A stretch of DNA of 64,000 nt from Syncephalis fuscata S228 (lineage: Eukaryota; Fungi; Zoopagomycota): NCBI GenBank assembly GCA_025786725.1, contig JAHLTZ010000011.1, positions 620,001-684,000 of the forward strand. Reading direction: 5' to 3'. Position 1 is the first letter of the stretch. Each line of letters opens with the position of its first letter. Of this stretch, positions 5,940-27,097 are shown piece by piece. The translations under genes were made by a program, and so were the position numbers. The notes under the pieces are model-generated. The model saw only the letters and a list, made by a program, of their open reading frames with translations, had not been told where the DNA came from and did not search any database.

Positions 5940-7230
5940 TTAGCTAGAGCCACGAGTGCTATTCCTAGTCTTTTTAAAAATCAAGGCGCGACGTCTTGCT
6001 GCAATGACTTCCTCCGAAGGCGCAACAATCCTTCGCTGCCCTTTCACCTGCTTGTTCGTTTCATCTTTCCGCTTTTGTTTGACTAGTTGTTGTGTTACAT
6101 GCGGCATTTTTAGTACATCTTCCATAGCATCAGTGTCATCGGCACTTCGTTTCCGCTTTTTATCTTCTTCTTCTCCTTCTTCTTCTCCTTCATCTTGATC
6201 CTCAACTGCTGCTGTTGCTTCTGCTGCTAATCGTTTTTTCTCTTCTTTCTTATCCAAGAATTTAGCATCAATTCGTTGATCATCTAACACACGTAAACGT
6301 GGAAACCATGCTCGAATCTAGTGGGTTGTAACAGATATGAGACAATGCTTTTAAGTTTAAATATACATTGTTACCGTTTCCGTATAATTGTCCATCTTCG
6401 CAATTGGATTTCCCTTTAGATTAAGATTATTAAGCCACTTTAGTTTACGAATGGCTTCAATATTACTACATGACTAATTAGTACTATAATTCGATTATAG
6501 AGCAAACACACTTACTCCCAAGATGTGAATAGATTATCGCCCAAATCCAATACTTTAATATTAGCTGGCAGTAACTCGGCATTAATATTACTAATTTTAT
6601 TGCCTGATAAACGTAATTCACGCAATTTAATCAATTGTCGCATATCTGGCACTTCTCGCAGCATATTGTGTGCCGCACTTAATTTTACTAATTCTGGCAA
6701 ACGATCAAGCATAGGCAGACTTTCAATTTGATTATGTGATACCACTAATGGTGTAAAAGCTATGTTAATAGACTATTTTGTAATTACTTTACTATCTACA
6801 CCCGTAACTTACCAAGTGTATTTAATTCTGGTAAATTGACCAGTATATCGACTCGTTTCAACTTATTATGATTAAGCATAAGTGCACGCAATCCATGGCA
6901 GTCATTGATGCATTCAGGCAGTAGCTTGATCTCATTTCGGCTTACATTAAGTACATGTAGCTCTTTTGGCAACCAACTAATCCAATCTAGCTCTGTCAGC
7001 TGATTCCCCTGCAGAACAAGCTGAGTCACACCGATACATTTGCGCAAACCTGATAGTGCATCTGGATGACGGAGTGCATTACCTGTCAGGTCAACTCGTT
7101 TCAAGGCCGGCAATAGGCGAGATAGATCTTCAATATGTGAGATCTCTCGATTGCGCAATGACAAGCACGTCAGACGACTCAACGGCTCATCCGGCAGTAA
7201 ATCAACTAAAGTAGTTGGTGTTAACTTCAT
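5940..7230 (-). CDS. Leucine-rich repeat protein (SDS22-like repeats plus LRRcap) with acidic/basic C-terminal tail
   Basis: Repeated LxxLxLxxNxI motifs in ORFs 6796-7230 and 6512-6745. LRRcap LNLKGNPIA..NY...IRAWFPRLRVLDDQRI. Three GT-AG introns. E/K-rich tail; the extreme C-terminus is uncertain. Confidence 0.8.
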
Positions 7231-8050
7231 CGCAATTACAATGTAACAAAAAAAAGAAATAATTAATTTTATTAATCTAATAATTGTGGTGTCTATAAAA
7301 GGAATGTTACAGTTATTAATGTTACTACAATAACTGTTACTATTATGCCCTGCTTCTTTTATTCAATCTCTTTTTTTCTTCTTTCTTTCTTTCTCTCCTT
7401 TATTCTTTCTTTTTTGTTTTTTCTTTTACAATGCTTGGATCTATTAGTTGATGTTAAAAGGTACGTATCTTTAGTAATTAATGGTTGTTATTGTACTGCA
7501 AATTGGTGTATCACTTTACAAACTTTTGGTGTTGTTACTGTGGTATGTCGAATGGATCTTGTATCTGTTCCTCCTTGTCGAGGATCGTTTGCTATATCAA
7601 AATATGCTGCTGTTTGAGGCGCCAACTCTAGTTTATACAATCTTGCGAGTTGGCGTTATAGGTGTGCCGCAAACATTAATAGTTATTCTACTAAAACATA
7701 TACTAATATATTTTACTATTTAGATCATTTACACAAGTTTGTCCTGTATTGCTTTGTATTTATCATAATTAAAATAAACGTTACAATTAAATCTAATACT
7801 TAATGCTACTGTATAATAATAATAACACATGATAAACAATATATTTATAAATGTTACTATATTAATGATACAATAAAGTGATAGGATCCATCCATGATAT
7901 GTAAATGAATACATGTCATTATATATATTCTTGTATGATCGACACCTTGTATTAAACTACAATACATGACACTGTCTATAATTGATACATATTCTATAGT
8001 ACTGTAGATAATAATTACCTAATGATTATGCCACAATAACGTTATAATAG

Positions 8051-10201
8051 CTACTTGGTAATTCTTGGTCGTTTATAAATACTATTGTTGCTAGATAGTG
8101 CCACTTTTACATAGTTTTCACCTTTCATAGTCGATGATTGTTGATTACTATACAAGTTTTGTATGGTACTTGTAAAGTTTTCCTTGTCATCTTCACAATC
8201 TGATATAAAATCACTATCATATAATAAATCCGATGATAATGGATCAGAAAAGTCCATATTAACATCATTATTAACTAGCATTGGTGAAGATGGTTCTATA
8301 TAAAAATCAAAATCATCATCATTCTTCCATGATATTCTTCTAGAAGCGCTTTATATCAATTAGTATCAATTAGTATATAACATTGATATTCAACACTTAC
8401 CGGCCATTGATCGACCGTAATACAGTTGAATATTGCTCTGATGATATCAATTCTAATATCTTTGACCGAAGCATATCCATGCTACTATAATCCATTTCTG
8501 TCATTGTTCTACCAGTCTTCTTGCTTCTAATACTTTAATTGCTTGTTCATATAAATTCACTGCCAATAGATGATGATTCTCTTGATGAAAATGAGCTCCA
8601 ATTTTAAATATTAATCCTGAATGATTAATTAATATAGCAGCTGTAGTAAGGCTGGTTTGTTGTAAACGCCAAAAATCAGCAACTTTATCAGCTAATGTTG
8701 TGTCGAATTTAACCGCCATTAAACATGGCACCATACAAATCTCTCTTGGTAACAATGGTTGGTTATTATCAAGAATAAGCAAGGTTAAGCTAATCATATC
8801 TTGACGCCAAAGTAAACTATCTTGTTCATCATCGATATTACTATCTATAATAGACTTCTCTTGATTAACCGAATAGGTAGCTATCAATCGAAGTAGAACA
8901 CAGAGTCGATACGGAGTAGTGGCATGTTCCCAACAAGTAGTATCGGACAAGATGGCCGTTATCGCAACCAATGCTAATGGATAAGCACTAGAAAGTGGTA
9001 ACTTTTGACAAAATTCAACTAAAGTTGCACTACAAGCACGCAATGGTGTCAATGTAGCAATGATGACGTCAATAAAAGTGTTTTCTTTCTTAAGAATTGC
9101 TGCCAAACAGTATAACTGTTCCATATCCTCTCGAGATGCAGGAAAATTGTATGTTATACGTGATTTAATAAACGAGAATGCCTTTATATATATATATCAA
9201 TTATTAGATATATTTATATTTATATCAATGTTATTTAATTACCTGTATATCAAGTCGATAACTTAAACATACAATAATTAATGGATCCAAAAATTGTGGT
9301 AGAAAAATGGCATATTGATTACACATTTCTAACATATGTCCCACCAACACATAACTATAGAATAGAATATTAGTAATTATTTAATAATATTAACTATTAT
9401 TATAATTATTGTTTACCTTTTTAAATGATCTGGTACATTTTCATATACATTCTCAATTTCACACCGTATTTCATCTAATATCATTGGTTAGTTGGTTGGT
9501 TATTAGTATATATATATATAATAGTATATATAATAATTCACCTTGTTCGTCTGTATCTTTAACCATAAATTCTAATCGTGAAAGATATTCTCCAATGGAA
9601 AATGCTGATAGAATACTCAATAGTATAATATGACTGCTTTTAAATGACCTATCCGTGCCATTCTGGTTATTATTAAGTGTCAATTCTTTAGATGGTATAT
9701 TGTCCCAAGGTGCAAATGGTTCAGTGCATGACCATTCAGTACGTCTGCCAAAGTGTTTAATCCAAACACCTTTACACCATGTCTTTCGTAGAACATCGAC
9801 GACTGATCACGTAACCGTATAGAATTAGCATGTATATGTTGCAATTCAGCTATGCTCTGTGGTGCTATCGATCGTTGGCTATTAATTTGAGCATAGTTGC
9901 CAATACCATTGTTATTACTACAGTTATTGCCGCGTGATTGTCGTCCATAAGTAGCAATAGTACTGCCACTACTACCATTGCTATTTGATCGCTTCTTTAC
10001 AAATGAAGTATTGTTTAAAGTAGTATATGTGCATTTTTCTGTCAATTCACGTATATTGTCGTTTGAATTCTCCCGAATAATAATGACAGCTGGCTTGAAA
10101 ATACTGAACGAGGCCAGCTTCGCTTTAACCGGTCTTAACATTCGTAGTAGACGCAGTGTATCGACCGTCTCTATAGATCCACATACACTTAGGGAATCCA
10201 T
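8051..10201 (-). CDS. Multi-exon hypothetical protein (helical core, acidic C-terminus)
   Basis: Co-linear minus-strand ORFs 9680-10201, 9471-9683, 8501-9124 and 8051-8281 are linked by short introns and a probable frameshift near 9700. A possible extra 3' exon lies at about 7490-7690. No family recognised. Confidence 0.6.
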
Positions 10202-12248: not shown

Positions 12249-15200
12249 ATTATAATAATTATGATTATAATTATCAATAGCAACATTATAAGTGTTATTA
12301 CTAGTACAAGTGTATAAATGTATTAGTGTATTAGTGTATATCTGCATCAATGTTATTATGATGGCTATCAATATGATTATTTCCATATGTGTTTGTTATA
12401 CGTATCTTTTCTGTATACCAGTGTATTAATAGAATGACCAAGGGTCAACCACAAATTTAGATGGATAAGATTGAAATATCAACCATTGTGACTTTGTTAT
12501 CACTATAATAGTCAATGGATTCACGCAACTGCTACACGCCATGAATACAAAAATGGCAGTATCTATTTTCAACAAACATCAAGGTTCTTTTTTTTATTCT
12601 TGTCCATATTCAGACCAAAAAGTAAAAAAAGTTTCTCGCCCATAGTGATGACGGACAATATTATTACCGAACAACAATGATTCAATCGATATGCAACGGT
12701 AAAACTATTAATAAATACACTATTTTACTATACAATAATTACCACTGTATCTCATGACCATGTCGGTCCTTTGTAACGCATAATAGGTAAGCAGAATATT
12801 AATTATAGAGATAAAACGACTGGATACCAGTGATCGTTGGTCATTAGGGCTTACCAATGGTGCATCCACCAATGCTTTATTTGTATCACACTCGTTTCAG
12901 CAGTAACACGATACACGCGTGCGTTGCCAACCTACCTTTATATGTACACTCGCATACATCTGCTACCTGTACACAACAACAGCATTCTACCTGTAGTAGC
13001 CATAATGGCAGTAGAATGGCAATGGCATGGTCCATTGCCGATAATAAACAGTCACGCCGCCTTTTTTATCGTTGCTGTTCGATAGCACTACACTTTTATG
13101 CCATGTCGACTACTATGGCCTATATTACACAATAGCTGTGACAGCATATCAATTCTGACGCACATATTAGCACTTGTATTCGTATTTTGTAAAACACCGA
13201 CTACAAAGGCAGCGTCTAGCATTTCCCTTTTTCCTACCTTTTCTATTCAAAATAATCACACCTTTACTCATATCTATTCGCGTCCATAAATCACGACCTT
13301 AAAGATGATCCTCTGCGTATGCTGATTAATTGATTTGGTGTGGATGGTTGGTTATAGAATAGAACAGAATAAAAATAGTAGAGCAAAGTTAATAATATCT
13401 ACTTGCAGAATTACCGACGCCGAATTGACCTCCACGTGAATCGCCGCCATATTCAATGGGCATAGTATAATGAGCACACGTGTCTTCAATTCGACTCACA
13501 TGAACCATGTGATGTCCACACCCTGGCATCCATAAAAATAAATAAAATCTCTATTATAATGTATTAGTTAACAACAATGACGCATATCCAAAAAGTCAAA
13601 AGAATGAAATAATAAACGGAAATAGATGTAAAAATAAAAATGATAGAAAACAGACTACCACAAAGGAACGGCACGCATGACGTTGAGTTCGATAGACTTT
13701 GGCATGAACCTGCTCGACCGTGCAGCATCAAGCACTCCTTCCTACATATCGCCGACCGAGATATGAGTAATTGGTGCCATGAATTCCACGCATGTACCCC
13801 TATCGCACCGGCAAATAGCCATAATGCAGGCCATCCGTAGGAGGTCAAACAGCCATAGGCAGGCAAGTAGGCAGGCAGGCAAGCAAGCAAGCCGACCGGT
13901 AAATGGAGAGATAGATGGATAGATGACCACACGGTCTATTACTATCCAATAGCCGTCCATAGTGGGGCCAAGAAACATAGGCATCCTTGTTATCATAGTA
14001 ATAATCAGAATTAGTCCATTTATGGTAATTGCTGGCATCTTCCAAATAGACCACACACCCACACACACAAGCTACCAATCAATCACACGCAATACAAGGT
14101 GATACGGAGAGCGCGGGGAAACGACGCTTGTCCATTAACAAACGAAATATATGTAGGAATGTATGTAGGTACGTATGTGTCTATGTGTGTGTCTATGTGT
14201 GTGTATATGTATATATATGTGTGTGTAGCAGCTGCAAATGCATCCATCACTACGAATAGCAATATGACAGCAATAGTCCTGGTAGCATCGTCATTTAGCA
14301 TCATGCTCTTAATGGACTGTTGTTTTGGCTGTTGCAGCTACGCTCTGTAATGCTCAATCTGACCTCAGTTCCTTTTTTTTTGTTAAATACTAGACCTGTA
14401 CCTTGGATTTCTTACTCGAGTCTACTCGCCACTGCCTTCTCGCTCACTTTTTTTTCTTGTTACTTGGACGTTTAACAACAACACGATATCCATCTTTTTT
14501 TTATTAACCACTTGCTGGCTATTATTTTTCAGTGCTATTATACCTACTGCTATTACTACTGCTACTGCTACTACCGCTACTTCTACTTCCACAGTTACTA
14601 GTTAGTTAGCTATAGTCAGTTTGGGTGGTTTTGCTTTGAACGAATATCTATATTTCTTTTGCTTTTCAGTTTTTTCATTATAATTGTTTTACTGCCATTA
14701 TTTCATTTTAACTACAAATAGTTTGACTCGCTATTGGTGTATTTGTTTAAATAATCAATACGTGTTTACTGTGTAGTGTTAGAGAAGCTACTTTTCGTCC
14801 ATTGATTCTATCTACATCTCTTTCTTTCCATCTCAATCTATTCATATCTACACATAGGTATCGTTGATTTACACTGTCGCCATTCGTCATCAATACGCTA
14901 TTGTCATTGACGATTGGTAGTGGTACTGATATTGATATTCTTTAGCAATTTGACTCTATCCGCTAGCATATATACACGCACGTACGCCTACATTTATCTA
15001 CGCACGCGTCTGTATTTGTCTATCTGTACCTGTCATTCTATTCACATTACAGTATCTATTAATATTTAGTATTAATCTAATTGGCCCTCTTTCTCACCAC
15101 TTACCTTTTCTACTCTTCTCTTTTTTTCATTAGCGGCCAATCGATTATATCAAATTCTATTTGCTGTTACATTTTCATACACAGCCCATTGCCTTCTCCC

Positions 15201-16060
15201 ACGATATTCCATATTAGCGTTTCATACTGGTAGTGGTGGTCCGTCCATTGCCGAGCATCCGATAGCAACACAGCCACACCATTAACGCTCGTTCGTTTGT
15301 TCTTCGTTTATTCTTTTTTTAGTCATTGCTGCCATTGCTGCTGTTGTTGTTACTACATTTACTTTTACTTTCACCTTTACCAACTATAATATTACTACTA
15401 CTGGTATTAGTATTAATAGCTTTGTTATTGTAAAGTAACTACTTTTCCTTTATCTCAACGCTTCCTTCTACTCCATCTATCTGCTTCTTGCGGTTTCGTG
15501 GCAATTGTCTGTATCAGAGTGCAATTGTACTCCTTGACTTTTGCTATCCTTTGTACGTACAGTGTGCGTGTTTCTCATTCTCATTAGCATTGTATCAAGC
15601 ATATACTGAGCATTGAGTAACAACTCTGCCAAGCAAGCTCGCTAGCACGAAATAGGCGATAACCACCAACCAACCAACCAATCTCTCTTCTCTCCTTTTC
15701 TTTCCTTTACGTATCGTGCGTGCACGAACTCGAAACAACATTGCACAGTAGAGAACAACAGCCGCAGCACGTTCTCTTAAATACTACACTGGTCTGTCGG
15801 TACATTGCCACGCCGCGCCTTTTCCTTTCCTCTATTTCTCTTTGTCTTATTTTGCAACTGTTTTATTTAGTGTATTGCCTCACTGTCGCGTTATTGTAAC
15901 TATCTACTATCCTTTCTTCTAGTCTTCTATTCTACCTGTGACTGGCATTGATATCAAAACAAGTCTATTGACTTTTAGCAACCATCGCAGCAACTGTCGT
16001 CTTTAACAACAACATCGTCATAACTAGCACAGCAATTCAATTATCATTTCTATTGCCATC

Positions 16061-18544
16061 ATGCCACAGCCATTAAAATCACGGCCTAAAAATATTATTA
16101 CACAAATGCAACCACTCGACACGTCGTCCCATGCTCCAATGGAAGGCTCGTCCGTCCTACCGGGATTGCCGACACCGACCTTCACTGGATCGTCGTCACG
16201 ACATCGACATGCTGAGAAATCCGACGCAGCTTTACAGCTATTAATGTCGCTGTTTGCCGATGATCCTAGTAATTCGGACAGTCACTGGCGACCAGCCGGT
16301 GAACGCAGCGGTGTACGTATTAGTGCACACGACACACTAATGGGATCAGCCGGTACATTGCCAGTCATTCGTGGTGATGGCATTATCGAAGGTGGATTTG
16401 CACCCAGAGAAGTCATGGCGGTTATTAATAGTTTAGGTGCCCGTAAAATATGTAAGATAATAATGATAATTATAGATGAATAGGTCAATGGCTATTTATA
16501 TAATAATGAAACAAATAATTCATTTATACTAATTTGTTTTGTTAACACACCATTTAGGGGATACTCGATTTGACGGTGGTAAACTAGTTCAAATATTCAA
16601 TCCAACTGAATGGCTGGCCCATATTGCACTTAAAGGCACCTTTCCCATGATGAATCGCGATGTTGTTGTTATGACACAGTTTTATCGCGATGAACGCAAT
16701 GGCTTTCTATGTTATTGCTCTACATCAGTGGAGGATTCGCTTGTGCCAATTGACCCGCAAAAAGTACGAGGTCATTTAGGTCTAGCTGGCTGGGTAATCC
16801 GGCCTGATCCCACCTGTATGTATGGTGACCGACTTAAGGTTACCTACATTGTACAGATGGATGTAGGCGGCCAAATGCCTCAATCAATTGCCAAAATGCT
16901 TCAACGTGAATTACCTACGTGTATTAGTGGCATATCGCGCTATTTGCGGCGCTTTTCATTCCCGCCCCACTTTATTCCACAGCTATCGCCACCGAGACGC
17001 CATGCCTTGGCAAAGCCATTGCCAAGTAAGTCACCAAGACGGCCTAGTCGTCGTCCTCGTGGTGGTATACGTATCATTCACGATACATTTGAACATCGAT
17101 TGGCTACCTACGATCTTGCCTATCGTGTTGAATTGAATCCATTTGCTGCAGCTGTTGCAGCTCATGCTGCAGCCATGGGCTCTTCATCATCGATTAATTC
17201 AGTTATGTCGCAACAGCCATCACCACCTTCATCTTCACGTTCATCATTTAGCATAGGATGTGGTAATAACACGTCCTCCAGTACTGAAGTAGTAACTGTT
17301 GAAGTACGTATACCACAGCCACTTTTCCCTCATGGTGTTCAGGTCGATGTACGGCCAGCTGAACGTGTTGCTTGGCAATTGATCGACGAGCGTACCGGAA
17401 AAGTAATTGATGAAGGCGGTGAAGCAAGTGAGGCAGTAGTGGCGGCAGCATGCGAACGACTGGCCCAATTGCCCTTGTTGTCGATGAAGACGACGACGAT
17501 AACGATAAGGGACTTGAAAATGGATTGAAGAATATGTCACTTGATCGTGATAGCCATAGCATTAGAAATGATTGCAGTGAAGAGGATGACTGTTTTGCAT
17601 CATTGCCATCACCAGTACTGCCTGGCCGACTTGTTCCACTCACCACGAGTGACAATATGACAACCGTGCCTACTTGTGCATTTGGCCGCGTTGTGCGACG
17701 ACGACGTGTTTCTAACTCGAGCGAGGATAGCGATGATATTACTGGCGGGCCAAGTCATGGTCTAATGCCACGACGGGCCGGTGTATTTGCCGCTTTACCA
17801 GCTGGTCTACAAACACCTATACTGTCTTATCAGCAGCCGCAAGGATTGCCACGATATCCGCTTTCGTCTAGTCGGTCCTACACCACTGACTCTCCTCTAC
17901 CGCCACCGTTATCAACGACATCATCGGCATCATCTATGGCCAATGGCGCGTCACTAATGCCGTGGGTTGGTCTGTGTGCTACACAGAGTACACCTGCTAC
18001 CATGCAAACACCGGCCACCAATCATCATCACCACCACCAACAACAACAGCAGCAACATTATTCGGCATTGATGCCTGGTACGACAATAAATTCAAATATG
18101 ACAACAGGCCATGGGCCTTATATCTCACAAATGGCTGGTACTTTCCGTCGATCAACGTCGGCCCTTTCGACACCTAGCTCGAATTCACCATTATTGCCAC
18201 CAGCCACGCTGCCACCCATCTACAGTACAGGCAATACTGGTACAGGTGTGGTAGGACAGATTGGTGTACGTGGACTATCACGTAGCAATAGCACTTCGTC
18301 GGCCTGTTCTGTAGCCACTAACGCGAGTGCTTTTAATCACCGCCGATGCATTTCACCGATGCCTGTCGCTGACTGGCAACATGGATACGAAACACGTCAT
18401 CCAGGCCACCGACTTGTCATCTATAACGATGCACGCATCGATGGACGAGCCGTGCAAGTATGTGTGAAGAAACGACCTTCACCTCACAAGCAGCAACGAC
18501 TATTTGGTACGAGTACATCATTAAGCTGGATCCACCGGGATTAA
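16061..18544 (+). CDS. START/Bet v1-like lipid-binding domain protein with long low-complexity region
   Basis: LPVIRGDGIIEG..ARKIWDTRFDGG..FPMMNRDVVV..VRGHLGLAGWVIRP..VTYIVQMDVGGQMP is a START signature. One intron at about 16452-16558 and a frameshift near 17470 joining ORF 17450-18544. Confidence 0.82.
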
Positions 18545-18780
18545 GTGCCGCGCGTTTCCTATTCCTTTCCTTTCATTTCATTTGTGTGTGTTTTCTAACT
18601 ACAGCTGCTACAACAAAACAATACTTGGTATTAAAATTGTGTTTACTTTATTACTTATTAGCATTAATGCCATTAGTATTATTAAATTTTATTTGTGTTT
18701 TAAATAGAATATCAAACTTATTTGCTGTTAAACAAACTTTATTGCAGCAATGATTGGCAAACATTGACAAAATATGAGGA

Positions 18781-19937
18781 TTAAAGACTAACGTCAGTAT
18801 CTTTTTCAGGTGCGCCAATATGTAGGAAACCATTACCGGGGGCCCAGGCCTTACAGTTTGCTGAACTGTCCATACCAATGCCAAAGTAATGGTTATGACG
18901 AGCAATATCGGGCAATGGAATAATTGAAGCAGAGCAAGTTGGGTCACCTCGATGCTGGCCTTGCTCACAGATGGTGACCTTCATACCATCGGCCGAGTAG
19001 ATCCAAGCCTCAGTATCGTGGAAGTAATAGTTAAGCACTCTTAATGGCAGTCGCGGGATAATATCGTTGTAGTTAATGACGTGTAGCGGTGATGGGAGAT
19101 AGTCGTTGGCTGATTGATCCATTGGCTTGTAAAGTCGCTTGTTAATTAATTTGGAGAAAGCGGCGTTGCCAGATTGTGGTTCACCAAACGTGTAAAGTTC
19201 AAGTTGAACCGATGATATTTCAAGTATATCAAAGTGAAGAGCAGCCAAAGTAACAATTGCTATTAAAGTTTGTTAGTGATTGTTGTTAATAAACTATTGT
19301 TTACAATAATAATGTATATTATTATCCACCTCGTCCCTTTTTTCAACTTACCACCACCCATTGAATGGCCGATAAAAGTAGGTGTGTAGCGTGGATATTG
19401 CCGTACGATATCACGTAGTGCATCAATCAATTCACCCTTAAGACCGTGGTAGCAGTTAACGAAACCAGCGTGGATGCGAACACTTTGATCTTCAATCCAC
19501 TTGACCGGTCGTTGAATTAGAAGCATGTTCTGTGTCCATGACTCAATACTGACGGCACCACGAGAACCAATAATAATACGTCTATCGCGGTCATTTACAG
19601 CAAGGTAGGCATAGGCATTTGTGCGAGAATCGAAGAAATGACGGATGTATCGAGTACCGGCCGTCGCACCTTCACAGTTCTCGCCGCAATCCCATTCACT
19701 AACATCACAGGCGGCAGCAGCAGCGTAACGAACAAATAAGTTCAGCTTATTCATCACTGGCTCCGACACCGACTGGTGATTTCTTTGTGGCTGCAATGGG
19801 TTAGGAACACCCGGCATAGGTACCAGCGAGGCAAGCGATGGGGCAACGAGCCCAGCCAAACAAAAGAAAGAAAGGCTTTTAAGCTTTATACAAATATTAA
19901 ATTAGTTATTAATAAATTACATTTAACTTACCATCAT
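18781..19937 (-). CDS. Secreted class 3 (fungal triacylglycerol) lipase
   Basis: Signal peptide; RIHAGF; nucleophile GHSMGG; YTFGEP; NYNDIIPRLP; HNHYFG. Micro first exon (ATG ATG) and an intron directly after GHSMGG. Confidence 0.92.
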
Positions 19938-21314
19938 TTGGTGTATTAAAAAGTGTATCAGACAGTGTATTAACAACAAATGGCTATTAGTATATAGAAG
20001 AAAGATAGTCTAGTGTATTAATTAAAAGAGAAATGAGTGATAAAGTGTAGGAATAACAAGTAGCCGTACAATTAGAGCACTTTTATACTGATCGGCTAAG
20101 TATCATAGATCAAATGCCACGCCTTAAAATATTGGTTATATAGAGCATAATGATGTATAACGGCGATAAGCATGCTGATCTTTGCTTAAATGAATGATAG
20201 GCGTCGTCTACAGCATGCAGCAATAGGTTTAGCGTGATGAATAAAGGTAGAGAGTACAGAAATGCACGCTGTTGCACAGCATATTCTCTATAACAGTTAG
20301 TATGAAAATATTTAGCTAAACATTGCACTAGTATAATTTAGTTAATTATAGTCATAATTAATAATTAAATAGTATAGACACTATTCAATGCTATACCAAG
20401 TAGTTTAATAATCGGTGACACTATCCATAATTATAAGAAACTTATGTACTACACAATAGATCTTACATTGGACAGAATAAAGAGCCAATAAAAAAGACAC
20501 ATACTAATCAATGATACAACAATGGTAATGTCGAAAATGGAGCAAAGGCGACCAATAGATCCCATAGACACATTGATTTGTTCCTATTGTCGGCTATAAG
20601 CATGCATGGTTGACTTTGTTGAAGCTACGTATATAGAACAATGCGCACTGCATGTGGGATGTCACCCACGGTCATGCCCACTTCTACAGTACGTATTGTT
20701 AACCCGCCCACTATCCACCTTTTAACTGAGTCTAGTACGAATTAGTTGAGTCGATTTATTTGTAGATGAACTATTAGATTGTAGATAATAAAAGTTGCAA
20801 CCTATTTAGGTGATACACATTTTTACAACTATTTAACTTTTACAACTATTATTTCAATGATGTCATAATGAACAAATAGTAATTACAACTAATTTATAAT
20901 AATTTATAATAATTTATATTGCACGATTTAATTGAATTTATTAATATGATGTTTTAACCAACCAAGTTTAGAAATAATTAAATTATCAATCTACATATCC
21001 ATAATCATTAAACAACTATTTATTGACATGATCAAAAGACACGATAAACCGTATTATAGACATTGATGCTAAAGTAGTGATTGTATAATTGCTCATAGAT
21101 AAGCGGATCATGTGGTAATGGCGCCTTATTACAATATGTCATAGTCCCTGAGTGCGTCATCGTTTTATCTATTGTCGTGCAGGTTCTTTCTTTTCTTTTC
21201 GTCTTTCTATGAAGCTGCCCTTTTATTGCCATCATATAACGCCAAACTAGCGGTTAGCCGGCCTTTAGTGATCTTTAAATTGGCAATTGTTTTTGTTTAT
21301 ACTAAAAAGCAACA

Positions 21315-24096
21315 ATGCCTACTCATCAAAACTGGTCCACTAACAATAGTATATTTCGCCAGATGGAGCAGATTTGCAATAGTAACACCAACTACATGGA
21401 ACGTATATTACAAGTAGAAGATGACACTATTGGCGTTAACTATCGTCAAGAAGATGCAATGGAGGATACACGACGCGGTCCTAATCCTTCGACATCTTTT
21501 TCAGCTCGCTTAGATCCTAATCAGCAGCGACAATCACGAATGGAAGGCAATGCACCAGCAGACTATGGCCATCCACATAGCCATAACAACAGTGATAGCC
21601 AAGATAATGAAGAAGAAATACACGATAAAAGAAGCGTACATGGTACATCTACCGGTAAACAAACCGGCAATGATGTTCTATTATTAGTGACGGCCTTTAC
21701 AGAAATGTGTAGAACCATTCGATTTCTACGTCAGTCCATGCCACATCAATCGTTAGAGCCACCACCACATTTCTATTACACTGAGAATGAAGCGGCTCGC
21801 CATGTCAATCGACACTCAAATAATGAGATGACATCACCACGTGATGAGTCTACTGCTAATCAGCACCAAAACCATTCAAGCTGGAATGGTAATGAACAAA
21901 GAATCGATCCGATATTAAATAGACGTGCTATTCATTGTGATACTGCTACAGTAGAAGAGGCAGATGTAACTATCCCAAGGAGCCAGCAAGGATCAGATAC
22001 GTCATCGACTTATAAAAGGTCATCAAATAGGTAATGTTAAATGAATGGTAATTAATAAAGAATGCTAATGATAAACATAGCGAAGTGAAGACAGCATTGA
22101 AAGCCTATGATAATACACAAAATACTTCTACACCACATAATTACTATAAGCAACAACAAGATGAAGAAGAAATAGATCTATTTAAAGCAAATAAGGAACA
22201 AGATCCACCAGTCGTGTCATGGAATGCAGATCGGCAAAACGTCCAGCCAATAGTCAATCGAGCAACAAGTGCCACATATAGCATTACTAGTCCTAAAGAT
22301 AGATCTTCGCTTTCGTTATTTACAAGCTATCCAGAACAGCCTACTGACCAAGAGAACAATGAAAATAGATATGAAACAAAGAACGATAATGAAATGTCAA
22401 GCAATTAGACAACGTAACAAGAGATAGACGATCGTCGTTATTAAATGGACGCAATTTATCTACAGGCAGTTTGAAGCAAAAACCAGCCTTTTCTAAGCAA
22501 AACAAACAAGATCGTGTTAATACTGTTGTGGCCCAACCTCATGTATTTAGTGGTACAGCAATTTCAACCAGTTTATTATCTAAAAGCCATTTAGAAAAAG
22601 ACATGAAAGCCAATGCATTAATATTGGCTCGTTTTAAAGGTACTCATTTACCAGGCGATGCAGCTCCTTCGCCAACAATGACTGGAACGGTTAACATGGC
22701 AAATGAGACGGCTCGAGTAGAAGATGAACTACAGGCCGATGCATCTTATTGCGGAACAGATGACTGCAATTACTGTCCACCGAATGAGATGGCGTCTATG
22801 AATTCTGCCTCTGCAACACCAAATATAAATCATCCACCACCATTGCCGGAATTTTTCCAGTCAGCCAGTATGGATTTGAATACATATTTATCGTTAGAGG
22901 AGGAAGGAGAAAGACAAGATGATGAATATGTCGATGAAGACGATGGGACGAGTCAGAACGAAAGAGATGAAAATAGTGTAGAATTGAGCCATCCATCGTT
23001 TTTTGAAGGCAACATAGAGAATCGTCTATCTAGCACTCATCGAAGCTTCCATATGTCCAGTCCCATTATGTCCAGTGTCAATGAGTTGCTAACTATTGTG
23101 TCGCCCAAGCAAACGGCAACCACATTGGTAGACGAAGGGATTGATGATATGATGGCTATGTCGCCTCCTTCGCAGTCAGTATTAATGTCATCACCACGAA
23201 CAAGTGGTATTTATCCTAAAGCTTTCCCGATACTATCAAATGTGTCAGCATTACCCGATAAAGTAGCCTATAATGACCATTATAATGATCATGATGATTA
23301 TAATGATGGACTACGTATCAGTAATTCAATGGCACCGCCAGCCGAAGTGTCTTCACTTATTAGTCTACCAGCAGATATTGCCAATATTTATCATCAGTTA
23401 GGATTCTCAGAAACTTTGGATCCACCGCCTATCACACCACGTATCTTAAGAGCGATACGGACTACTTTGAATCCAGAGCAGAACAACAATGATGCGCGGT
23501 TTTGGGGAATTTGTTTATTGGGCTTCTATGGCATGTTTAGCGTTGATGAACTACCGGATCCAATATTTAGAGATGCTATAGGCAGTCCTTTGCCGATTAG
23601 ATTCAGAAAGAATATAGCTACACTGAATAAGCCAGTGATTGACAATCCAGATTGCAATGAATTGTCGCTGTATTTGGTGTCTTTGCCCGTCAATAAAACA
23701 TCAAAACCGGGCAGTGATCATAATGCATCAGTTCTCTGTCCAAACAAGGCTATTCACGAGTGGCTAAGTATCGAGGAGTGTGGTCCACCTCGACAATTGG
23801 CCCAATACTTATTGGCTGGTGCGATATCGCCCACCAGTAAACAATGGATGGAACAGCGACTACAACAAGCGCTTGAAGAAACTGACCTGGATGAATTCCA
23901 TGATTTTCATTATCGCGAAAATTATCAGCTTGATAGTCTGCGATTTGGCGGTGCCGTTTGTGCCTATGAGGCTGGCGTAAAAGTAGATAATATTCGATTA
24001 GTCGGTGGCTGGAATAATTATAACACTATAGCTAAGTTTGAACTTGACTCGCTGGCCAATAATTTGGCATCGCATGTTAATCGATGCTGCCTATAA
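21315..24096 (+). CDS. Large low-complexity protein with C-terminal inactive tyrosine recombinase (DIRS/Cre-like) domain
   Basis: Three co-linear ORFs joined by a GT-AG intron (about 22032-22080) and a probable 1-nt indel near 22395. The C-terminal ~220 aa carry PITPRILRAI..FWGICLLGFYGMFSVDEL..LCPNKAI..YQLDSLRFGGA..AGV..GGW..KF. Confidence 0.78.
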
Positions 24097-24341: not shown

Positions 24342-25024
24342 TTAAGCGGCAAGCATTGCTACAAATGCCGCAATAGAAGTTGCAAAAATAAAAAGATTAG
24401 AGTTCTTCAATTCCTTGTTAGCATCGTTGTTAGAACCGGCGGAATTTGAGTTACTTTGGGTATTAGACGGGGAGGATTGAACGGTAACGTTACATGTTGC
24501 TGTATCTTCTTTAATCATTTTCATCATATCGATATAAGGCTTGCTGTTGGTTAGAACAGGTCGCGGTGAAGTCCATGAAGCTCGTGCTTTAATGACATCA
24601 ATCATACAGCCGCTACAATACTCGGCTGGATTACTTTTATTTTTCTTATTGCCGGCTAAGCAGTATTTTCCATCGACCGATTTGGTACAAATGGTCTTTG
24701 GGTGCATCAAGTAGAGTAGCCAGATGCTATACGCTGTTTGTGCAGCATTATCCGGCCCCTGAAGTTCAGGCTTGCAGTCACGCTCCACCAGATCAAGTGC
24801 TTTGTTAATTTGGGCATCGGAGCAGAAATGGCCAAATGCTCCATCGGCAGGTGCGCTACACGTTTGAGTTATACTTTCACCGGCCAGAACGGCGAAAAGC
24901 GTAATTAGGCACTGATGCTCAAGATCAGGACTTTTTAAAGTCTTGCTGCAAGTTGGGATACATCTGCTGCAGCACACAGACCAACAGCGGCAAACAAAAG
25001 AGCAATGCTAGTAAAGCGTACCAT
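24342..25024 (-). CDS. Secreted cysteine-rich, probably GPI-anchored surface protein
   Basis: Signal peptide MVRFTSIALLFAAVGLCAA from ATG 25024, with a 1-nt shift near 24957. About 10 Cys, an S/N-rich stalk and a hydrophobic C-terminus LFIFATSIAAFVAMLAA. Confidence 0.72.
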
Positions 25025-25607
25025 GTTCGTTAAATAGCTTAAAGCGTAGCAGGTAAAATAAAGAATAGTGTTTATTCCTGGCTATTGCCAGAAAATAAGC
25101 CAGTATTTAAAGATAATTAGCGCTAGTAGTTTATTCTAGACAAGAAACGTGATAGAACATGCTAATGGAACCAGATGCACTTGAAAGGCCTTACTTACAT
25201 TTGCGTACACGCAGTTTTGGTAATTAGATATACAGCTCATTAAAAATGATTGTTAAACTTAATAAAGGCCTGGTCATTGGCAGCTTTAGGGGTTGAAAAC
25301 GACACGTTTCCTCAGTAGTTGACACATGTGGGCCGTGTGCCCGTGATATTTGTTTCAATTTGTTACAAGCGTTAGTTGTTTAATTCTATAGTTATTTACA
25401 TTTTAACTAATAATGCATTATAATAGCCATGCTAAACTAAACTAATTAATAATATATTATGCATTTTTACTAATTAACTAAACAATATTGTATAAAGTAA
25501 CTTGGTATTACTTTCAGCTATCTTTATAAGTGGTAAATGAGGCTAACACATGAGTATTGTTTTACATCAAAACACGACCTACTTATAACACTAAGGTACC
25601 TATTTAC

Positions 25608-25648
<41 letters not shown>

Positions 25649-25680
25649 GATGTTATTGTTATTATTGATGTTATTATTAT
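25608..25680. repeat. (TTA)n/(TTG)n microsatellite
   Basis: Direct reading of a long ttattatta tract. Confidence 0.9.
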
Positions 25681-26154
25681 CCAATGTTTTGAATAGGTCA
25701 TTAGATAACGATAAAACTGACGCTATTATTTAAATAATAACATAGCTGTAAGCATGTCCTTGCTTCTACCATTAGTCGAATGCCAGTTACACGAAAAAAG
25801 GGGTGCTCATTATGACGTCGTCTTTTGAGTTTTTTTCCTATCATCCATATAGATTTGTGTGTATGAATGAGCGAGCGAGTGTCTATATACGTACAGATAG
25901 AGGATAGATGTTCTTGTGACGACCACCGCCTTTTCCTCTCTTTAACACCACTCATCTCATCTTTGTTGTTATTATTGTTGTTGCTGCTGCTGCTGCTGCT
26001 GTTGTTGTTATTTGTTAATATCAATAACACCTTTCTCTTTTATCAATTGTTCTGATAACACGGCTGCCGGCCACAGTTATTAGCAAATCTGCCATTTTTA
26101 GCTAAATCTACTGCTAATTAAGCAGCAGACTTGAATAATAAGCCACTAGCGATC

Positions 26155-27097
26155 ATGGCCACCGACAATGAAAAAAGTCGTAAAATTGTAGTGCTTGGTT
26201 TTCGTGCTGTTGGTAAGTTGCTTTGAAGCCGATGGTTTATAGATTAGCAGCTGCAAACCAGACTCATCCGATACTAATATGACTTGTTTATATCGGTGTT
26301 TATATAGGCAAGTCTACTTTAACAGTACAGTTTGTTGAAAATCATTTTGTCGACTCGTATTATCCAACGATTGAGAATACATTTAGCAAAGCAATTAAAT
26401 ACAACGGTCAAGAATATCAATGCGAGATTATTGATACAGCGGGTCAGGTAAATAGTTGTTGTTATAAATAGTTAATAAAACACTAGAATATACATACTAA
26501 TATACTAATATACCAATGTATATTAATACAAATATATCCGCTGATTATAGGATGAGTTTTCGATTCTTAATTCACGACATGCCGTTGGTATTCATGGCTA
26601 TGTACTTGTTTACTCAATTACCTCAAAGAGTAGTTTAGAAATGGTAAAGATTATCCGCGATAAGATTGTAAACTATACTGGTTCTGAATGGGTACCCATG
26701 GTGCTGGTGGGCAATAAAAGCGATTTACATCTACAACGGTAAGTACTTTTTAATAAATGGCAATAAAACAAGCCATTTACTTGAGTATTGGCGATGGTAA
26801 ACTAATTGACATTTTATCATTAATAAACATATTAAATTATCATCATTGATATATAACAGACAAGTCTCTGAGGAAGAAGGCAGAGAATTGGCAAGCCAAT
26901 GGTCCTGTCAATGGACAGAGGCATCGGCCAAGCATAATGAGAATATTAGTAAGTTGCAATATGATTGTAATGTATAGCAAAAGAACGTGCATACTAAATA
27001 AGCATAAATAGATTTGATATTTGAAATGCTTTTGGCAGAAAGTGAGAAATTGGCAGGAACAGATGCTGCACCCAAAGGTGGCTGTATCATCAGTTAG
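26155..27097 (+). CDS. RHB1: Rheb small GTPase (absent from ORF track because of short exons)
   Basis: Five exons give RKIVVLGFRAVGKS (Rheb-specific Arg in G1), FVDSYYPTIENTF, DTAGQDE, GNKSD, EASAK and CAAX CIIS*. Confidence 0.95.

Follow-up and report, generated by a model that had tools for sequence, protein, structure and literature searches.

Domesticated tyrosine recombinases (YRs) have been described in animals (ZMYM, QRICH1 and KCTD1) and in yeasts (Ndc10, Gcr1 and Msn1/Hot1), and all published cases have been traced to Cryptons (PMC3212892). The animal Crypton-derived genes have lost the Tyr and the second Arg of the active site (PMC3212892), and yeast Ndc10 binds centromere DNA with its YR-derived fold (PMC3212892; structure PDB 3sqi). 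Recently, the domestication of YRs in fungi was called little explored in the 2026 Glomhopper paper (PMC13465315), and our literature search returned no description of a host gene derived from a Ngaro or DIRS element, or of the family reported here. This family includes a gene at positions 21315-24096 on the forward strand of a 64,000-nucleotide stretch of Syncephalis fuscata S228 (contig JAHLTZ010000011.1, positions 620,001 to 684,000; the window), for which an earlier note, made from the letters alone, had proposed a catalytically dead recombinase taken over by the host. We conclude that it is probably a host gene of the Zoopagales, with a C-terminal domain of 240 residues that is a dead YR from a Ngaro-like retrotransposon and that would act as a non-enzymatic binding module, likely in a nuclear regulator or scaffold.

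The gene is similar to the animal DUF3504 genes (ZMYM2/3/4, QRICH1, KCTD1, KIAA1958 and WOC), in which a YR domain without the full catalytic tetrad stands at the C terminus of a long regulatory protein encoded by a conserved host gene (PMC3212892). However, it differs from them in host kingdom, partner domains and, most likely, donor lineage, and it has no match to PF12012. The pattern of residue loss is also different, as the Zoopagales gene has kept the second Arg and lost the first, whereas the second was lost in the animal genes. Similarly, the yeast CryptonF-derived Cbf2/Ndc10, Gcr1, Msn1/Hot1 and Cdg1 are host proteins of fungi in which the YR-derived fold has no catalytic site, but these are defined by GCR1_C, which is lacking in the Zoopagales proteins, and are confined to Saccharomycotina.

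Fold and active site of the recombinase domain

The segment 23374-24093 is predicted to encode a YR catalytic domain, which would be a member of the structural superfamily and not an enzyme, and its resemblance to YRs is well beyond chance. The AlphaFold2 (AF2) model of the domain, built on an alignment of the family with active relatives, had a predicted local distance difference test score (pLDDT) of 77 and a predicted template modelling score (pTM) of 0.80, and all of the best 50 Foldseek matches in the PDB were YRs. Cre of phage P1 was the best match among solved structures; VIA-align superposed the model on Cre residues 131-318 with a Z of 12.8, a root-mean-square deviation of 3.2 and 159 aligned residues, at 15% sequence identity. 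Z was at least 8 for 78 of 168 PDB chains, YRs took the first 43 of the 50 places listed, and topoisomerase IB and Ndc10 came next in the structure ranking with a Z of about 6 (6.1 for Ndc10). In the ESM Atlas, the search by shape led to clusters of eukaryotic hypothetical, retroelement and Xer-like proteins (template modelling scores of 0.58-0.71), and the search by features gave weak leads only (0.89-0.90).

With phmmer, an exhaustive comparison against 1.84e9 representative proteins yielded 12 matches, namely the product of the window gene itself, three Zoopagales proteins and eight others; PF00589 was carried by six of these eight, and the YR matches had E values from 5.7e-8 to 6.5e-4. The profile of the family found Cre at E 0.0045, and hhalign aligned the domain with a DIRS YR of S. 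fuscata itself at a probability of 96%. With phmmer against the PDB, query residues 245-283 aligned without gaps to Cre 287-325, at an E value of only 1.3; this reproduced the ungapped alignment given in the earlier note, in which Asp is opposite H289 and Phe opposite Y324. The homology to YRs begins at the linker helix. The 333 residues upstream of it had a pLDDT below 50 in an AF2 model of the whole C-terminal piece of 567 residues (pLDDT 37), which was based on an alignment of three sequences and gives weak support for disorder only; no core-binding (SAM-like) domain was detected in this model.

The active relatives in the alignment have the Arg of box I (Arg-I), the Lys of the KT.QF motif, an HS.RRGGA box and G.W followed by Tyr. 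In the window gene, Arg-I (R173 in Cre) is replaced by Ser, the beta-hairpin Lys is kept, the His of box II (His-II, H289 in Cre) is Asp, the second Arg (Arg-II, R292 in Cre) and the Trp (W315 in Cre) are kept, and Lys or Phe stands in place of the Tyr (Y324 in Cre). The latter depends on the spacing: the nucleophile of the active relatives is found eight residues after the Trp (Trp+8), which corresponds to Lys 24034, and the Cre spacing of nine residues (Trp+9) leads to Phe 24037, so that neither position holds a Tyr. The claim that Phe is the equivalent of the nucleophile is thus correct at the Cre spacing and fails in the family alignment.

In the Syncephalis plumigaleata ortholog the pattern is Ser for Arg-I, Lys kept, Asp for His-II, Arg-II and Trp kept, and Lys/Ser at Trp+8/+9. 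The ortholog of Thamnocephalis sphaerospora has lost Arg-I, His-II and Tyr and kept Lys, Arg-II and Trp. Both domains of a Thamnocephalis paralog lack Arg-I and His-II and have Arg-II, and its C-terminal copy has kept the Trp and lost the Tyr. The Ser, Asp and Phe that had been expected in all orthologs are thus not common to them: S. plumigaleata has Ser and Asp, with Ser in place of Phe, and Thamnocephalis has other residues. As the replacement residues differ between the two genera, nothing points to a new catalytic arrangement.

Judged from the alignment, the active site appears dead in every member of the family and, with Arg-I, His-II and the Tyr nucleophile lost, the domain should not be able to cut or rejoin DNA. 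The fold has been retained, and so has the portion of the phosphate-binding pocket that consists of the hairpin Lys, Arg-II and Trp. The earlier proposal of a YR fold with a broken active site is upheld by the Foldseek matches, the Cre superposition and the alignment. The four motifs on which it was based share a single frame, which is closed by the TAA at 24094-24096, and the codons that it named, AGC for Ser (23539), GAT for Asp (23932) and TTT for Phe (24037), were read correctly.

Donor element and resident recombinases

The donor of the domain was most likely a Ngaro-like retroelement, to judge from the layout around the nearest active YRs, the distance of the resident DIRS elements and the lack of a DUF3504 or GCR1_C signal. 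The nearest active relatives are 24-27% identical to the domain, and the motifs PITP..L, FW..CL, LCP..A, R.GGA and G.W are common to the domain and Ngaro-like YRs. We fetched 80 metagenomic loci of these relatives with a query alignment of four sequences. The longer contigs had a constant order of a gag-like first open reading frame (ORF), an ORF of 560-730 aa, the recombinase ORF and, in many cases, one more ORF. With Pfam, the second ORF was identified as RVT_1 (with RT_RNaseH in two cases) and the fourth as a GDSL hydrolase, and no methyltransferase was found among the ORFs of these contigs. Such an order of reverse transcriptase and RNase H (RT/RH), YR and hydrolase without a methyltransferase is the Ngaro-like layout (PMC9210276; PMC4157794). 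Split direct repeats were not seen in three Ngaro-like relative contigs, which are probably incomplete. In a maximum-likelihood (ML) tree, the Zoopagales clade was placed among the Ngaro-like YRs, its closest active relatives; the sister placement to one particular Ngaro-like YR was weak (88/48), and the tree did not include Crypton, PAT or VIPER reference sequences.

A Crypton-type DNA transposon, instead of a Ngaro retrotransposon, is in our estimate an unlikely donor, although every published domesticated eukaryotic YR has been ascribed to Cryptons (PMC3212892) and Cryptons are present in zygomycete fungi (PMC3212892, PMC13465315). The tree, with its missing Crypton reference and the weak exact position, would accommodate such a donor. 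However, neither DUF3504 (PF12012) nor GCR1_C (PF12550) matched the C-terminal ORF of the window at E values up to 10, or the orthologs and the paralog at E values up to 1, and the best non-orthologous matches were related to YRs with neighbouring ORFs for RT/RH and a GDSL hydrolase. In structure, Ndc10 also matched far less well than Cre. The absence of both Pfam families and the low rank of Ndc10 agree with the suggestion in the earlier note that the gene arose independently of the Crypton-derived Ndc10, Gcr1 and DUF3504 genes.

The Ngaro-like donor that we prefer was one half of the earlier proposal of a DIRS/Ngaro-type origin, and the half that the gene order of the relatives supports. A DIRS1-like donor was rejected, as the DIRS YRs of S. 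fuscata have an identity of only about 17% with the domain and sit on branches of more than 5 substitutions per site.

The genome of S. fuscata contains at least six DIRS-type retrotransposon copies of two families (C90:123206-126139, and further copies in C312, C314, C34, C201 and C344). They have an intact frame of 958-991 aa that ends in the recombinase, except for one copy with a frame of 540 aa. In the copy that was examined, from the family in C90, C312 and C314, the recombinase ORF overlaps an ORF with RVT_1, RNase_H and Dam-methyltransferase domains. Within each family, all copies had the same score, a sign that they may have been active recently.

A dead subunit can, in principle, disable the YR tetramer that it enters, as is known for Cre Y324F, and a dominant-negative transposon repressor was among the roles suggested earlier. 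A protein that poisons tetramers of active YR retrotransposons, or occupies and masks their recombination sites, would have at least six intact DIRS copies to act on in this genome, with ORFs for a YR and for RT/RNase H/methyltransferase, and the conserved C-terminal helix with an HV..C motif would also fit such a role. However, no suitable partner was found: a search of the S. fuscata genome with the family profile detected no Ngaro-like YR, and the core-binding domain that is needed for site recognition appears to be missing. Since the only recombinases found in the genome are the distant DIRS enzymes, we regard a repressor function as very improbable.

Probable host gene, its reading frame and orthologs

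The preferred reading, a host gene with a domain of Ngaro-like origin, can be compared with what is expected of a mobile element. Protein, profile and DNA searches found one copy in the assembly of 29.4 Mb. No terminal or flanking repeats of at least 20 nt were present at the locus, apart from one near-repeat inside the gene and one AT-rich, imperfect short inverted pair upstream. Unlike in Ngaro-like elements, no RT, RNase H, gag-like or hydrolase ORF lies beside the gene, and the neighbours are conserved host genes. The order of a START-domain gene, a lipase gene, the dead-recombinase gene, a small Cys-rich gene on the minus strand and an Arf-type GTPase gene is collinear with S. plumigaleata JAIXMF010000002.1. 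Unlike a Ngaro-like YR, the domain has lost Arg-I, His-II, Tyr and apparently the core-binding domain, and it follows about 690 aa of a host-type sequence that is predicted to be disordered and has introns. From its sequence, the locus thus appears to be derived from a Ngaro-like element without being such an element itself.

Between the window and S. plumigaleata, the proportion of nonsynonymous differences (pN) in the domain was 0.271 and that of synonymous differences (pS) 0.755, which is saturated, over 223 codons. As the neighbouring START gene has a synonymous divergence (dS) of about 2, the ratio of nonsynonymous to synonymous divergence (omega) of the domain is roughly 0.17 or lower. 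The domain appears, on this comparison, to be under purifying selection. The single copy, the lack of RT, RNase H and repeats nearby, and syntenic orthologs with an omega below 1 had all been anticipated, and were found in the genome searches, the repeat scan and the collinear S. plumigaleata locus.

The ortholog of S. plumigaleata has 867 aa and is 60% identical to the window in the domain. T. sphaerospora belongs to another family, and its ortholog is 39% identical in the domain and has the N-terminal block, the three-Cys motif and the PPPLP motif in common with the window (Table 1). A search with the domain of the Thamnocephalis ortholog found only itself, and a profile search of the 90% clusters, from which a length filter removes long proteins, led to one protein only. 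The Thamnocephalis paralog (RKP05028.1, 1153 aa) carries two tandem dead recombinase domains at residues ~584-720 and 940-1122. In the ML tree, the five dead domains of the Zoopagales formed one clade (97/94), within which the window joined S. plumigaleata (100/99) and then the Thamnocephalis ortholog (98/97). A single clade of dead domains argues for one domestication and a later duplication in Thamnocephalis, and the occurrence of both the domain and the N-terminal motifs in the two families indicates that the fusion architecture predates their split.

Three open pieces in three frames span the gene: A (21315-22030), B (22081-22405) and C (from 22393), with 239, 108 and 567 codons. All are free of stops in DNA with a GC content of about 39%, and the pieces were searched separately, not as a joined spliced protein. 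Since each also matches the ortholog, they belong to one gene. Exon 1 aligns to residues 75-186 of the S. plumigaleata ortholog, in which the N-terminal block is likewise found, and exon 2 is 44% identical to residues 252-328 over 77 aa. Removal of the predicted intron joins the two exons in frame through a split codon, AG/C for Ser, and the S. plumigaleata ortholog has an intron at the corresponding place. An intron had been postulated here in the earlier note, with a start at 22032 that is one base off. A second discontinuity, a break of the frame at about 22393-22417, had been missed there.

Table 1. Positions of the features of the gene in the window, with the basis of each assignment.
Feature	Position	Strand	Basis or remark
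Exon 1	21315..22030	+	ORF from ATG; mostly low-complexity/disordered, one conserved block
Conserved N-terminal block DVLLLVTAF.EMCRTIRF.R, predicted helical	21672..21737	+	65% identity over 29 aa to Thamnocephalis ortholog residues 58-86, E 2e-8
Predicted spliceosomal intron, 50 nt	22031..22080	+	GTAATG donor, CTAAT branch-like site, CATAG acceptor
Exon 2	22081..22405	+	conserved acidic block, then DLFK.NKEQDP.VVS; closed by in-frame TAG at 22406-22408
Frame break, -1 shift	22393..22417	+	three-frame translation; unconventional splicing, or a 1-nt indel that is real or due to assembly
Long linker, predicted disordered, with short conserved motifs	22418..23373	+	AF2 pLDDT <50, residues 1-333 of the C-terminal piece
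Three-Cys motif S.C...DC..C..P	22741..22782	+	columns invariant in window, S. plumigaleata and Thamnocephalis orthologs
PPPLP motif, proline-rich, ligand-like	22834..22857	+	PPPLP invariant in 3/3 orthologs
Predicted inactive YR catalytic domain, 240 aa	23374..24093	+	AF2, structure matches, phmmer
Arg-I position (Cre R173 equivalent), Ser (AGC)	23539..23541	+	aligned to invariant Arg of active relatives
Beta-hairpin Lys (Cre K201 equivalent), kept	23629..23631	+	aligned to invariant KT.QF Lys; invariant in 3 orthologs
H-x-x-R box as D-S-L-R: His-II to Asp (GAT 23932), Arg-II kept	23932..23943	+	alignment
Trp (Cre W315 equivalent) kept at 24010; Trp+8 Lys 24034, Trp+9 Phe (TTT) 24037	24010..24039	+	alignment
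Stop codon TAA	24094..24096	+	sequence reading

The S. plumigaleata ortholog is continuous in one frame where the window breaks. We listed all GT/GC-AG joins with a length of 35-200 nt by which pieces B and C could be linked without stops (n = 45). A canonical donor was absent from all of these and the better candidates would remove residues conserved in the ortholog, and an intron at the break was therefore rejected as unlikely. With no canonical intron to bridge it and an ortholog that reads through, the break is most simply explained as a 1-nt indel, which may be a real lesion or stem from an error in the assembly.

That the locus is the decaying remnant of a YR element, still open by chance and without host function, would account for this frame break, the lost catalytic residues and the missing Pfam match, but it is hardly credible for a single-copy gene with a collinear ortholog in another species, a pN far below the saturated pS, a domain still recognisable in another family together with similar N-terminal motifs, three long stop-free pieces at this GC content, and no RT, RNase H or repeats nearby.

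The near-repeat inside the gene is 21 nt long and 86% identical (21600-21620 and 22154-22174). Each copy codes for an acidic D/N-E-E-E-I patch, which in the second copy lies ahead of the conserved DLFK motif.

Some differences from S. plumigaleata were observed among the neighbouring genes. The small protein encoded directly downstream (24342-24977, minus strand) is Cys-rich and probably secreted or of GPI type. Its gene appears to be fast-evolving, with 33% identity to the S. plumigaleata counterpart versus 76-84% for the START gene and 94-100% for the Arf gene. The gap between the Cys-rich and Arf genes is about 1.3 kb in the window (25007-26283) versus about 7 kb without called genes in S. 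plumigaleata (13741-20642 of the compared locus), and the latter may be an insertion. Additionally, the window has one lipase gene (Lipase_3; 18784-19901, minus strand), versus two in tandem in S. plumigaleata (6329-9334 of the compared locus).

Proposed history and role

We propose that the YR catalytic domain was captured from a Ngaro-like retrotransposon before the split of Piptocephalidaceae and Sigmoideomycetaceae, and that it would no longer serve an element. The dead domain may now function in binding, without enzymatic activity, at the C terminus of a protein of about 900 residues that is predicted to be mostly disordered and carries a few conserved short motifs: the N-terminal helix, the three-Cys motif and PPPLP. 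Most likely, the protein would be a nuclear scaffold or regulator whose dead domain attaches to DNA, to chromatin or to another protein, as is the case for ZMYM/QRICH1 and Ndc10. Nucleic acid or chromatin on the one hand and protein on the other seem about equally probable as the ligand. DNA binding is favoured by the fold, by the fact that Lys, Arg-II and Trp are still present, and by the earlier examples of Ndc10 and ZMYM. A homodimer prediction of the domain scored 0.00, which gives no evidence either way.

Several observations weigh against this proposal. The domains of the two Syncephalis species are acidic, with an isoelectric point (pI) of 5.2 and 5.8 and a net charge of -8 and -5, in comparison to a pI of 9.7-10.2 and a net charge of +12 to +15 for the active relatives; the Thamnocephalis copies have a pI of 8.3 and 9.5. 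Given these acidic domains and the fact that no core-binding domain is visible, DNA binding is less obvious than had been assumed. The domain has no direct match in Pfam, PF00589 included: no family was found for the C-terminal ORF at E values up to 10 or for the orthologs and paralog at E values up to 1, and the three pieces gave nothing useful. The gene is also not one clean frame in the assembly, and if the break is real, the strain could make only a truncated product or the called C-terminal product of 497 aa. The databases searched held only four family members from three species. The weak sister placement and the reference groups missing from the tree count here as well.

A more specific reading is put forward tentatively. 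The gene may be the first documented domestication of a retrotransposon YR (of the Ngaro/DIRS order), which would have given rise, before Syncephalis and Thamnocephalis split, to a chromatin- or DNA-binding regulator specific to Zoopagales and convergent with Ndc10 and ZMYM, and later to the paralog with two domains.

Taken with the described cases, the gene probably represents an independent domestication of a YR in an early-diverging order of mycoparasitic fungi, in which the same principle of reuse is found with a different donor, host lineage, partner sequence and pattern of residue loss. As domesticated YRs are few, the Zoopagales family offers a natural comparison for studying the new uses of a dead recombinase fold, and its four proteins form a small, defined set for studies of binding and structure.

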